Below are positions 33,636 to 38,512 of a stretch of 64,000 nucleotides of DNA, in pieces. The first letter of the stretch is position 1, and the number at the start of each line of letters is the position of its first letter. The stretch comes from Anthoceros angustus (Eukaryota > Plantae > Anthocerotophyta): contig MU008221.1 in the NCBI GenBank assembly GCA_010909165.1, forward strand, positions 62,001-126,000. The letters run 5' to 3'. The notes beneath the pieces are model-generated. The model saw only the letters and a program-made list of their open reading frames with translations, ran no database searches and was not told the DNA's origin. The position numbers and the translations under genes are program-made.

Positions 33636-35011
33636 ATGGCCGTCAAAATTGAGGAGAAGAATTCTCGCCGCCTAGTTTCCTCCTACGCCTCCTTTCTCTT
33701 CCACCTCACGTCCTTCTGCCTGTGAGTCTCTTGCTCAACGTGGTGGACAGCAGCAGCTTTCTTCGACTTGTAGTCGTGGTTGTTAGCTGTACACTGAGGG
33801 GGTTGAATTGTGTCAGAACACTGGTGTGTAGTGTGGACTAGGTGAGCAATTCGGTAACACGCGAATTTCTTGTGTGCGTCTCAGATTCCTGTACATGTTT
33901 TGTTGGCACTTCGGCAGCAAGGCTGGTTCACTCCCACAAGCCAGAGGCTTCGGGTGGTTTTTTAAGGTGAATTCTATCTCTCAATGGCCTCTTCACGAGG
34001 TGATGGGCGTTGCCGCCCTTACAGTCATGCGTGTGAAAGATTTTTCTCACGACAGATGCACTTTGGTGTGCAGTATCTGACGTTCTGTGGATTCACGTTG
34101 CAACTCATAAGCCTGCTCTTCTGTGTGCTTTCCCATCTCTTCCCTCAGGTCTACTCTAATCTCTGGGAGAATATGTTCTTTACTTCGTTGCTCCTCGTTG
34201 AGCTTCTGAGTGAGCTTGAGCTCAGTAGTGACAACGGTTTATTCCTCTAGTGCAGATCAGGACACTGAGGGCCTATGCAGATGATCTCTCATGTGCAAGT
34301 TTTGTGATAGCAAATGTTGTCTCTTGTTTATACTGGTCCATTTTCGTGGCAACAACAAAGCCTGTGGAGGGAAGTGGGCTCAAAGTCCTTGGCCTGTAAG
34401 TTGCACATGCCACCCTCGGCAAGGCTTCCGTGTCTCTACTTCATTTGAATCCCTACAGCATTTCTTCAGGCTATGGGATAACTGACCGGCAAATTTGTGG
34501 TGTGCAGAGAGTTAACCTCCCCATTCTGGGTCACTCTATTCATGCATGTAGGGAACGCCGTTGTGGCGTGGATTGATGTTCTCATATCCGAACGCAGTTT
34601 CAGGTGCTGTCTTTCACTACTCCCTTGTACAGTTGACAGCGGCTTTTCCCTGGGAATGTCAAGAATGTCTGCTAACACTCGAAGACTCCTGGTGCAGAAA
34701 CGTGTCTTTTTGGATCGACATTGTGTTTTCCATGTCCTATGTCCTCTGGCTCCACATTTGTGCAGCTCGAAACAAGGTGAGTAGTTTTAGCAGACTTGTC
34801 GTACCACAGGGCATCATTCCCCATGAGAAACTGAGCCTGAAATTGCTAAGTGCAGGTGTACCCTTACCCCTTTCTCAATGCCCTCCCTCAGCCGGCTGGC
34901 TTCATTGGAGTGACTCTGGCTGGTTTCACCGGAGTCTGTCTCTTCTCTAGGATAGGCGCAATTTTGGCCAGACAAATGTCACCGCACCTGGGGAAGTTCA
35001 AGAATTTGTAA
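33636..35011 (+). CDS. FAR-17a/AIG1/ADTRP-like multipass membrane protein, ~7 exons
   Basis: GFGWFFK|YLTFCGFTLQ, LYWSI, LFMHVGNAVVAWID, YVLWLHIC, VYPYPFLNAL; internal exon limits approximate. Confidence 0.8.
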
Positions 35012-35186
35012 CCTCTCATGAGTCTCATTGCTTCTGCATATCCACAAACGTGGTAGCTAGAACATTGCGACTCTGCAGGCTGCCGGTGTGTTCTATCAAC
35101 CTAAAATCAAACCCTAGCCTTCACAGCTAGAACTTCGTGTTGGCACTGGTACATTTCTTTAACCATTGATCACCTTCGCCAAATTT

Positions 35187-36371
35187 TCAGTTGCATTTGG
35201 CTCCAGACGATGATTCATTACTTCCTACCTGCATGCCAAGCTCCAGCGAGGCCAAGCGGGCGCCTTCCAAGCGCGCAGCAATCTTGCGCACGGCGATGTC
35301 GCGGGCGAAGTCGGGGGACCCGTGCTTCGGCTTCACGTCGCGACTGAAGGGGGAGAATCCGCAGTCGTCGGTGGCTCCCAGGCGGTCGATGGGGATGTAC
35401 TTTGCCGCTAAGAGAAGATCGCTCCTCACCTGCTCAGGAGTCTCCACTTCCGGGTTGAGCGGGTTGATGACGCCGATGAAGCAGACCTGGGGGACGCCGT
35501 CGGCATCGCCGCGGCTGTACTTGCCGCACAGCTTGTACACGCTCTCCTTGTCCTCCTCGCTGGCGACCTGGATGAGAAAGTATCCGGCATTGAGCTGGAA
35601 CATCCGACTCAGCAGAAGCTCATACGGCACTTCCTTGCTATGCACAGAATCGCAGTCCCCGCCGGGGCAAGTGTGGATGCCGATGTTGCGTCTCTCCTGC
35701 GGGGAGAAGCGGTCCAGCACGCGGTTGTTGAGCGCGATGAAATCCTGCAGCATGTCGCGGCCGGTCCAAGGGTTCCGCGAGTCGTTCTTGTTCGCCAGCC
35801 GGCCCTCCGTGAAGTCGATGGACACTCGCACCGCGGCCGCTTGGAATCACTGCCGGATGTCCTTCTCCACCTCCGCCACCACGTCGTCAAGAAACTGCTC
35901 CCGGCTGTAGTGCTGGATCTCGCCTTCCAGCGGGTAGAGCAGGGACATCATGGACGCCGATATCACGGCCTGCTTCACCGGCCGCTTCGCGATGGCCACG
36001 TTCTTGGCCACAAACTGCGACGCATACGTCTTGTAGCGGAAGGGCCTGGAGGTGAGCCGCGGAAGCTGGCGGTGGTGGCCGTCGTCGAAGATGGCGAAGA
36101 ATTGGCCGTCCCCGGCGAGAGTGGACGCCAGGCCCGTCCCCGCCAATGTGTCCGTGATCGGGTAGGTCGCAAAGCTCGATTCCCGCTGCTCCCCGTCCGT
36201 CACGATTGGCTCTCCCACGGCCTCCAGCCGTCGAATTGAGTCCTCCGCTGCCTCGTTCTGCTCCGCTTGCAAGGCCTCCAAGGTGATGCTGCCCTTGTCG
36301 TATGCCTCGAAGGCCTCCTGCAGCTTAAGTGGCCGCGGCAGTGAGCCTACCAGCTCCGTCGGGATCGGCAT
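35187..36371 (-). pseudogene. Intronless microbial-type cobalamin-independent methionine synthase II (single-domain MetE-like) with one in-frame TGA at 35847-35849
   Basis: The two ORF-track ORFs share a frame: MPIPTELVGSLPRP..TDGEQ..PVKQAVIS..DIRQ*FQAAAVRVSIDFTEGRL..HTCPGGD..IGVINP..VETPEQV..DDCGFSPF; HxC and DCG zinc ligands intact; functional status unresolved. Confidence 0.88.
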
Positions 36372-37119
36372 GTCGCTCCTCCTCGAAGAATGATGCAAGT
36401 CGAAGCAATTCACTTCTTTCAACATGCAAAGTCCTGCTCCTGCTCTGGCTTCAGCTGCAGCACCATCTCCCGAGGACACGTCGAGGTCCCTGGAAGGATA
36501 AGAAAGACAAAGGAAGCAAGTGCGTAGCATCCATTCCGCCAACCACGTGCCCTGAGGACACGTTCGGACAGTATACCGGGACGTTTCGTCAACCAACAAC
36601 GTCCTTTGGCAATATACAATTCACAGACAGGGAAGATCGCCGCGATGAGGTCCCAACGATGAGTATAGACTACAGGTGAGATCATAAGGGTCCATGCCCT
36701 GCGGAGAGGACATCCTTCTCAACGCTGTAACACGTCTGTGAAGCCGCTGTGCCCTTGCAGGCTTTGGAGGTGTATCGGAATGCAGAAATTTGGGAATCTT
36801 ATAGCCTGAGAAGGTCGAATCCCGCCGCCTTTGCGGCGCCTGGAACGGAAAACGAACGACGGAGACTACACGGCTACGTCTGTACCGGGGTCACCATCAC
36901 GTCAGCAGCAGAAGTGATACAACACGATATACATATGTGAATTCGACATATGTCGACTTTTACGCTAAGTTTCACACATTAGGTGATCTAAATACAACAG
37001 ACGCGTTTGCCAACCCACGTTTAGCTTAGCTGAAGCTGTCTGAATGCTACCTCCACGTATAATGCAGGCAGAGGTTTAATGTACAGGCGCATCGAGCACA
37101 AAAATCAAGAATATCGGAT

Positions 37120-38512
37120 TCACTTCGGTGCTCCCCTTGGTAGCCTATTGGCAATTTCCTACAGAACAACATCATCCGATTAATGCCTGACCAAGGAGGA
37201 GGGCGACGTAAAGGACGAGAAGCCGCACAACCTACCTGGAATAACTCGTTCACGTTGTTCGCTGTTTTCGCGGAAGTCTCTATGTGGAACATGCTGTTAG
37301 CTTCAGCATAAGCCAACGCATCCTGTTGATAATGGTGAAAAGGGAGTGAGGATGAGACTGAAACCCACAGCAGTTCTAACCAAACACTCAAACTCAGTAC
37401 TAGCCCCCTCCGTACCTCTCGCTTCACTGTGCGCTGCTCTTCAAGATCAGCTTTGTTTCCGACAAGAGCCATCACAATGCCCGGGGTTCCATGCTTTTGC
37501 AGCTCCTGAACAGATGTCAGCAGTTTCATGGATTAAGCAGAGCTTCATGAATGCACAGCCAATATTGGACGACCTGAGAGTTACGGCACCCACCTTCACC
37601 CAGAATTGTGCTTTGTTGAAGGTTTCAGGACTGGTGATATCGTACACAACAACTGCTGCTGACGCTCCCCTGTAGTACAGCGGTGCAAGTGAAGCATACC
37701 TGGATGGGAACCAAGAAGCGCATAAGATCACAATCAGGTTGAAAATGGACAGTGCTGCGCCATCCCTACCACATCCAACACCAACGGATGGCTTCCCCAT
37801 GCCCTGCACATGACCTAACCTTTCTTGGCCTGCAGTGTCCCATATCTCGAACTTGACAGTCGTGGAATCTTGCAAGGCAACAGTTTGTGACAAAAAAGAC
37901 GCTCCCACAGTGACCTACACCGCAGGCAAAAAAAGGCATAGAATGTATACATGACAAGCCGCTCTTCATTGCAACTTTATGAAACGAGCAGTGATGCAGT
38001 GAGTACCTTAGAGTCCGGATCAAACTGGCCCCGCACAAATCTCAGAACAAGGCAACTCTTGCCAACTCCTGAGTCCCCTAGAAGAACCAACTGCAACACG
38101 CCCCTCACAAAAGTAAGACGTCAGCAATCACCTCCTCGAGCTCAAGCTTGACTGACCGTCTATCAAGCCCTCACAAAACCTACCAACCCATCCAACCTAA
38201 GCTCTGACAAGCACAGTTCCCAACCCATCCAGCAGCTGCCCAGCTCGCAACACACCTTAATTCTCAAAGTCTTGGAATCAAATGGATCAGCTTGCTCTCG
38301 TCTGCCATCTGACAGTCGCCCTTGCCCCTTCGCTGCACCCAACCACGTCACAAAAGCCACACCATGTGCGTGAGAAAGGACGCAGACACCAGCTCCTCAT
38401 GCAGAAACCCCCTCCGGACAAGGGTTTCCAAACGGATCCAAAACGGGCCTTTTCAGCCGAGTGGAGAAATTTGGTTTGAGAGCCAACCTGGAGTAGATCC
38501 TGCGCAACCCAT
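37120..38512 (-). CDS. RABF1: Plant-specific Rab5 GTPase RABF1/ARA6
   Basis: N-terminal MGCAGS (myristoyl/palmitoyl type), [32 protein letters not shown]; no C-terminal prenylation Cys (ends RLPRGAPK*). Confidence 0.95.

Follow-up and report, generated by a model that had tools for sequence, protein, structure and literature searches.

How did a gene resembling bacterial methionine synthases come to lie between two plant genes of a hornwort, and is it still intact there? The question is raised by a 64,000-nucleotide stretch of Anthoceros angustus DNA (GenBank assembly GCA_010909165.1, contig MU008221.1, positions 62,001 to 126,000, forward strand), referred to at its full length as the window and numbered from its first letter. 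A sequence-only reading, made without database searches, had singled out 35187-36371 as a horizontally acquired, single-domain gene akin to methionine synthase. We find that this gene was transferred into the plant genome from Actinomycetota of the Thermoleophilia type, that purifying selection acted on it in the plant, and that the copy in the window is most likely a pseudogene, probably of recent making, or a null allele in the sequenced material. The account as a whole, transfer from Thermoleophilia followed by selection in the plant and then by inactivation of a MetE-like gene in this genome, is in our judgement likely.

An interrupted gene of bacterial origin

The transferred gene is a minus-strand frame of 1185 nt, running from an ATG at 36371 to a TGA at 35189-35187, with 394 sense codons before the stop. 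The sequence-only reading had its extent right; what it did not list as seen, and betrayed only by the words 'repaired ORF', is that codon 175 is an in-frame TGA (35849-35847), so that the listing of open reading frames gives two pieces, 35847-36599 and 35187-35831. Between 35500 and 36500 the GC content is 0.62, whereas the adjoining DNA has about 0.47-0.50 and the window as a whole 0.485; the GC content at third codon positions (GC3) of the gene is 0.83. An RNA contig crosses 34854-36454 unspliced, and the gene is thus intronless. The earlier description of some 394 codons without introns and richer in GC and GC3 than the neighbours therefore holds. No paralogue was found within the 64-kb window.

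The two pieces (N-terminal, 35850-36371, 174 residues; C-terminal, 35190-35846, 219 residues) were searched apart, with the break written as X in scripts. Against 5.8 billion proteins, in two word searches with ranges of 120-383 and 137-437 residues, both pieces match proteins of 380 residues from soil metagenomes and metagenome-assembled genomes, at 85-87% identity for the C-terminal and 80-84% for the N-terminal piece. All matches that carry an organism name are bacterial metagenome-assembled genomes, from Solirubrobacteraceae, Thermoleophilaceae and unclassified Actinomycetota, with single ones from Kofleriaceae and Chloroflexi. Nothing above 87% identity was found in this collection, which holds no proteins of sister species and is therefore uninformative on their existence. 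The match with the best E-value, P0001, was set aside as irrelevant: its gene, flanked by TetR and Pirin genes on a bacterial contig of 4.5 kb, is either duplicated or misassembled. A second search covered one genome per species of bacteria and archaea, 185,579 species genomes in all, among which at least 590 stretches encode relatives. The best 30 or so loci belong to Solirubrobacterales/Thermoleophilales or unclassified Actinomycetota (77-85% identity), while other phyla, among them Acidobacteriota, Alphaproteobacteria and Desulfobacterales, follow at 65-76%. By tblastn the bacterial protein P0099 aligns to 36371-35232 over 380 residues at 84% identity.

In a careful maximum-likelihood tree of 89 rows, built without Ascomycota sequences, the window gene is nested in a 48-row clade made up exclusively of Actinomycetota and unnamed metagenome proteins (support 100/99). 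Within it, a 39-row clade rich in Thermoleophilia (91/96) holds the window gene, whose neighbours are two metagenome proteins (94/82); the nesting was unchanged once fungal and distant rows were added. The similarity search and phylogeny that had been suggested for finding the donor thus lead to a Thermoleophilia-rich clade within Actinomycetota. At the DNA level the gene is 77-79% similar to the bacterial loci, and the similarity is restricted to 36385-35225. It takes in a leader of 14 nt with the Shine-Dalgarno-like GAGGAGGAG, as at the bacterial loci. The relatives have TAG or TGA after residue 380, where the window has CAG, and the frame is longer by 14 codons.

Contigs from four public runs of three organisms (A, B and C) were compared over 34200-37400; X1 is DNA of the same organism as the window, and X2 is an RNA run, judged by the spliced joints in its contigs. 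The X1 contig has an even depth of about 17 over flank and gene, and the X2 contig is identical to the window across 34854-36454, with zero differences and zero gaps. In organism B a contig of 12.2 kb, and in organism C one of 4.2 kb, spans flank, gene and flank at about 93-96% identity. Spanning contigs that connect the gene with the plant DNA on its two sides exclude contamination and a chimeric assembly, and since the same junctions occur in three organisms, the insertion is older than their split. Horizontal acquisition, as first proposed, is borne out by the nesting (100/99) together with the linkage to plant genes in three species. Of the follow-ups suggested for it, linkage to both flanks is seen in contigs of three organisms, and orthologues are held by organisms B and C between the same two plant genes.

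The flanking genes are indeed spliced plant genes, as had been noted. Upstream lies a Ras-family GTPase gene on the minus strand (Pfam E 1e-14), with a CT..AC intron at 37158-37234; downstream, a converging plus-strand gene has three GT..AG introns and a frame that stops near 35010. About 177 nt separate this stop from that of the transferred gene. One exon of the convergent gene, which was scanned exon by exon, weakly matches Far-17a/AIG1 (Pfam E 0.061). The spacer between the Ras gene and the transferred gene (36423-36554) is rich in indels between species, with nine deletions of 43 nt in total in organism B. Within it, at 36432-36472, lies a GCAG/GGAGCAGG-like stretch of low complexity at which DNA and RNA contigs both break. 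The features of the locus are collected in Table 1.

Table 1. Features of the transferred gene and its surroundings, in window positions
Feature	Positions	Strand	Basis
Whole transferred gene, 394 sense codons and terminal TGA, cut at codon 175	35187..36371	-	Open reading frames; tblastn of P0099
N-terminal piece, codons 1-174, with predicted homocysteine-binding Ser10 (VGSLPRP) and Glu61 (DGEQRE)	35850..36371	-	Bacterial homology, alignments
In-frame TGA, codon 175; TGC (Cys) in close bacterial relatives; single third-position change	35847..35849	-	Sequence, alignment
C-terminal piece, matching bacterial codons 176-380	35232..35846	-	85-87% identity to bacterial proteins
Residues of the C-terminal piece: Asp186; His233 and Cys235 (35675-35667); Gln268 (35570-35568); Cys337 (35363-35361)	within 35232..35846	-	Alignments
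CAG replacing the bacterial stop (TAG/TGA in relatives)	35229..35231	-	Alignment with bacterial loci
Plant-specific C-terminal extension, 13 further codons and the present TGA; no bacterial counterpart	35187..35228	-	Alignments
Bacterial leader relic, Shine-Dalgarno-like GAGGAGGAG ahead of the ATG; DNA similarity to bacterial loci stops here	36372..36385	-	DNA comparison
Probable 5' untranslated region; RNA contig end at 36454, 83 nt before the ATG	36372..36454	-	RNA contig (no strand information)
Last four exons of the convergent plant gene, weak Far-17a/AIG1 match	34253..35010	+	GT..AG joints in RNA contig, frames
3' part of the spliced upstream Ras-family small GTPase gene; RNA contig end at 36512	36512..37908	-	RNA contig, Pfam

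A single-domain branch of the MetE superfamily

Scanned apart, the N- and C-terminal pieces gave no Pfam match, and only weak NCBIfam matches (E 1e-7 and 7e-6) far below the cut-offs. Full-length bacterial orthologues, 83-84% identical, do pass PF01717 Meth_synt_2 (31.5 bits against a cut-off of 21, residues 4-339), and the family profile matches 1ypx (E 1e-14), 3rpd (E 1e-12) and Thermotoga MetE. P0099, the nearest homologue, shares 84% identity with the window protein. Its AlphaFold2 (AF2) model reaches a pLDDT of 84 and a pTM of 0.87; a Foldseek search with this model returned 3rpd as the best match (E 5e-17, template-modelling (TM) scores 0.71/0.77), followed by the C-terminal domains of the MetE proteins of T. 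maritima, Neurospora and Candida. With the P0099 model as proxy, the window protein is predicted to have been a (beta/alpha)8 barrel like the C-terminal domain of MetE. The model has three loops of low confidence (66-79, 238-245 and 340-347), and these are among the most conserved segments of the family.

The homocysteine and zinc residues that define core methionine synthases have been described by Price et al. (PMC7857596). The counterparts of the homocysteine triad, S10, E61 and D186, are invariant in the family, retained in the window and equivalent to Ser433, Glu484 and Asp599 of MetE; the motifs around them read GSLP for GSFP, DGEQR for HGEFER and SIDF for LQLDD or IQIDE. Likewise family-invariant and retained are the zinc ligands H233 and C235 (IHTCPGG) and C337 (DDCGFSP), which correspond to His641, Cys643 and Cys726 in E. 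coli MetE numbering and align with mHiCrG and qCGfa of 1ypx. An N-terminal Meth_synt_1 domain is missing: the bacterial proteins have 380 residues, and the window frame starts at the same Met.

Single-domain 'core' methionine synthases are known as MesA-MesD and core-MetE (PMC7857596; PMC7005905), and the solved examples 3rpd (MesD) and 1ypx (Listeria YxjG-like) are the best structural and profile matches found here. Like them, the 380-residue family has a single (beta/alpha)8 domain of about 340-380 residues, lacks the folate-binding domain at the N-terminus, and carries both the His-x-Cys...Cys motif for zinc and the Ser/Glu/Asp triad for homocysteine. In contrast, it is only 19-20% identical to them, has an invariant Gln at the position of the zinc ligand Glu665, and stays far below the cut-offs of all NCBIfam models for them; a full-length orthologue scored at best 64.3/576, 56.5/406, 55.6/313 and 52.9/392 (score/cut-off) for the named core families, which were MesA/PRK04326-like, MesD/PRK09121, YxjG-like PRK06233 and PRK06520. 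With canonical MetE (EC 2.1.1.14, about 765 residues; plant, fungal and bacterial) it has the fold of the catalytic domain in common, whereas the protein of the transferred gene is half as long, lacks Meth_synt_1 and shows 13-16% identity when structurally aligned. For the MetE proper of the hornwort, vertical inheritance has been reported (PMC11439496).

Judged by its orthologues, the protein is a member of a large single-domain branch of the MetE catalytic-domain superfamily that lies outside every named family, and the likeness to single-domain MetE proteins seen in the sequence-only reading is real but distant. The family is highly conserved, with 134 of 380 columns invariant in 88 sequences from Actinomycetota, Acidobacteriota, Pseudomonadota, Thermodesulfobacteriota and Gemmatimonadota, and yet has no NCBIfam model of its own.

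From the residues and the fold, the family probably consists of zinc-dependent thiol methyltransferases that act on homocysteine and take the methyl group from a donor other than that of MetE. Because the N-terminal domain is absent, the donor should not be methyl-tetrahydrofolate-triglutamate bound in the MetE way. Several observations weigh against such an assignment. The fourth zinc ligand Glu665 (Asp in MesB) aligns with Gln268, judging from the alignments; this Gln is invariant in 31 diverse family members, is present in the window and aligns with the Glu of 'fLEy' in 1ypx. The family has no characterised member. When neighbouring genes were clustered over about 80 bacterial loci, no cluster recurred in more than 9 of them, and the family has in this sense no conserved partner; neither a MesX/DUF1852-like nor a corrinoid-protein partner stood beside the bacterial genes. 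An Rfam scan of 12 bacterial loci found no riboswitch, a tmRNA being the sole match. The top neighbour clusters are TetR, MetK, PfkB kinase and one without a Pfam family; metK adjoins the gene in 8 and the PfkB kinase in 7 of the loci, which makes a modest link to the methyl cycle.

Selection and transcription in the plant

To read the history of the gene in the plant, we counted sites that hold G or C in at least 90% of 30 close bacterial genes and A or T in the window. Such changes affect 47 of 327 third codon positions (14.4%), against 8 of 205 first (3.9%) and 4 of 126 second positions (3.2%; chi-square p 2e-5), and the majority amino acid is kept at 41 of the 59. As they run in the direction of the host's composition, they have most likely arisen in the plant. 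At the protein level, changes on the window branch were polarised by the sister and the remainder of the clade. There are 38 amino-acid changes, of which 29 lead to residues used by other family members. The 188 columns with a conservation of 95% or more took just 2 of the 38, against an expectation of 18.8 (p 4e-9). The comparison with organism B points the same way. All 43 gap letters of its piece 35197-36710 belong to nine indels at 36423-36554; these lie upstream of the ATG, and 1175 nt of the frame are therefore free of indels. Substitutions reach no more than about 3-4% in the frame but 6-7% in the flanks. Taken together, purifying selection acted on the transferred gene in the plant.

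Some of the evidence pulls the other way. The window branch is partly that of an unsampled bacterial donor, and the signal of constraint may be partly bacterial. With 38 assigned changes against 12, the terminal branch has roughly three times the length of the sister's, and two of the ten residues unique to the window are changes at invariant glycines, G109R and G179A; both suggest some relaxation. The unique residues as a set, 2 of the 10 at conserved columns (p 0.058), are too few to weigh on either side.

Transcription has to be judged from contigs without strand. The RNA contig over the transferred gene is fused to the plus-strand exons of the convergent gene, as is expected from overlapping convergent 3' ends. 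At its other end it stops 83 nt before the ATG and 58 nt short of the RNA contig of the upstream GTPase gene. A minus-strand transcript of the gene's own is the probable source, although the RNA could instead be a long 3' end of the convergent plus-strand gene.

The latter possibility leads to the alternative that survives best, namely that the insert was never used and is neutral bacterial DNA, present in RNA only as that long 3' end. The broken frame, the strandless contigs and the continuity of the covering RNA contig with plus-strand exons that carry GT..AG introns would all be in keeping with it. Neutral DNA does not account for host-direction changes that are four times rarer at first and second than at third codon positions, for changes that avoid the conserved columns, or for a frame of 1175 nt with 0 indels relative to organism B beside nine in the 339 nt immediately upstream; the end of the RNA contig close to the ATG and close to the GTPase contig also fits a transcript of the gene's own. 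We regard a gene that was never used as improbable, and past purifying selection as the better explanation.

The in-frame stop codon

Of 41 bacterial loci with the 380-residue gene, 27 have TGC at codon 175, and the corresponding column has Cys in 60, Ala in 27 and Ser in 1 of the 88 bacterial rows of the tree alignment. The TGA is present in the assembly, in the DNA contig X1 and in the RNA contig X2, and is therefore not an assembly error. Since a Cys codon turned into TGA by a C-to-A change, the most probable reading of this copy is a pseudogene of recent date, or else a null allele in the sequenced material. One point that could tell against this is that the stop might be older and shared with organisms B and C. 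Four codons past the stop lies G179A, adjacent to the change A177Q.

Could the gene still be functional, with the TGA read through or recoded, or with two halves that are made separately and assemble? Apart from the TGA the frame is clean, the catalytic residues invariant in the family are all retained, the region is represented in RNA contigs, and the stop falls at a column that varies among Cys, Ala and Ser. Recoding to selenocysteine, however, is rejected for the lack of a SECIS-like (selenocysteine insertion sequence) element: neither SECIS nor any other Rfam family was found in 34000-37200 at E up to 1, save for a chance lncRNA match. Selenocysteine machinery is not known from land plants. 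A restart at the first Met past the stop would lose the strand that bears Asp186, and A177Q and G179A, each of which hits an invariant position or adjoins one, resemble decay. In the same material, DNA contigs also contain alternative short paths with gaps of 1-2 nt in the frame (36090-36194). A gene that still works in this copy is thus decidedly improbable, and inactivation remains the preferred reading. The earlier suggestion that the gene could supply an alternative methionine or thiol-alkylation route is not supported for this copy, since its frame is cut by the TGA without a SECIS element and since the family fails all curated methionine-synthase cut-offs.

The X1 contig graph at 36090-36194 shows paired alternative paths of 44-56 nt, with depths of 5/12.9, 8/10.7 and 9.9/4.6 that sum to about the depth of the flank. 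Some of them carry the 1-2 nt gaps relative to the window, in the most conserved part of the frame, and one loose end fits the loss of GA from a short GAGAG run near 36117. These paths may represent a second allele with indels in the frame. At 35313, X1 has A where the assembly and X2 have G, a synonymous change on the gene strand (CCC to CCT, Pro353) and the only substitution of X1 in the stretch; 11 further gap letters of X1 lie somewhere in 34200-36119. X1 and X2 are listed as one sample yet differ at 35313, and the material is therefore probably not of a single genotype.

Other origins

A fungal donor, or an old and vertically inherited eukaryotic gene, would be the other way to place a member of this family in a plant. 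The nearest ESM Atlas cluster (features 0.98, shape TM 0.93) is mostly from Ascomycota, and a protein from Rhizoctonia shares 67% identity with P0099. That protein, however, stands beside other Actinomycetes, outside the 48-row clade of the window gene (99), which implies that the hornwort and the sampled fungal copies were acquired separately. In addition, no match above 87% bearing a fungal or plant name came out of the search of 5.8 billion proteins, and the gene retains a relic of a ribosome-binding site of bacterial type. Such an origin is accordingly very improbable, and an actinobacterial donor is preferred. Relatives beyond plants among eukaryotes (P0225, P0286) are the Rhizoctonia protein (Basidiomycota, 392 residues) and a Dictyostelium protein, 39% identical, and suggest repeated transfers of the 380-residue family into eukaryotes. 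The expectation that relatives would be found in bacteria and fungi is confirmed by the bacterial loci, the Ascomycota-dominated Atlas cluster and Rhizoctonia.

Bacterial contamination or a chimeric assembly, to which the high GC content, the high identity to soil bacterial proteins (84-87%) and a published A. angustus screen that, by the supplement text of PMC7027989, retained candidates only at 30-70% identity might lend colour, has a negligible chance of being right, given contigs from four runs of three organisms that tie the gene to both plant flanks, an X1 depth of about 17 that is uniform from flank into gene, a GC3 ameliorated to 0.83 from a donor median of 0.94, the loss of the bacterial stop and the absence of any bacterial neighbour gene.

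Proposed history and significance

The gene came from a soil-dwelling member of the actinobacterial class Thermoleophilia, from the order Solirubrobacterales or its close kin, and entered the nuclear genome of a plant ancestral to several related species, probably Anthoceros hornworts. The piece transferred, essentially the coding sequence with about 14 nt of leader, presumably landed between the Ras-family GTPase gene and the convergent gene, apparently for a membrane protein. Its product would use zinc to activate a thiol, most likely that of homocysteine, for methylation. In the plant, purifying selection retained the gene even as its third codon positions moved towards the lower GC content of the host; the bacterial stop was lost, adding 14 codons, and the region is transcribed. 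In the genome of the window, a C-to-A change would finally have turned Cys codon 175 into TGA.

As a transfer, the gene joins a known series of such cases. The A. angustus genome paper reports 19 bacterium-to-hornwort genes in 14 families, three of these families from Actinobacteria (PMC7027989). Its screen is described there as keeping only candidates 30-70% identical to the best hit, and this filter would have excluded the present gene. Neither a methionine synthase nor PF01717 is listed in that part of its supplement which lies outside the table of transferred genes (Supplementary Table 31), and the gene goes unmentioned in the available portions of PMC7027989, PMC8075897 and PMC11439496. 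Bryophyte-wide catalogues of horizontal transfer also exist (PMC12513842). Like the reported bacterium-to-hornwort transfers, the gene is intronless, richer in GC, of soil-bacterial type, placed among plant genes and common to related species; unlike them, the present copy is broken by a stop.

It is conceivable, though unlikely, that Anthoceros hornworts keep a working, folate-independent MetE-like homocysteine methyltransferase and that the TGA is a null allele of one accession. If so, this would be the first enzyme of the 'core' methionine-synthase type in a land plant. The core enzymes characterised so far take methyl groups from methylcobalamin, and hornworts have been reported as the land plants that retain B12-dependent metabolism (PMC11439496); the enzyme might then tie into cobalamin from the bacterial partners of hornworts. 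The enzyme would further offer a way into a very large and highly conserved bacterial and fungal family with a His-Cys-Gln-Cys metal site.

On the preferred reading, an inactivated copy of a once selected gene, the locus adds a well-documented and fairly young bacterium-to-hornwort transfer that would have escaped the published screen with its 30-70% identity filter. Long selection followed by a single disabling mutation makes the dynamics of gain and loss of transferred genes testable across Anthoceros species and accessions. Finally, the gene points to an abundant and extremely conserved single-domain MetE-like family in soil bacteria and fungi.

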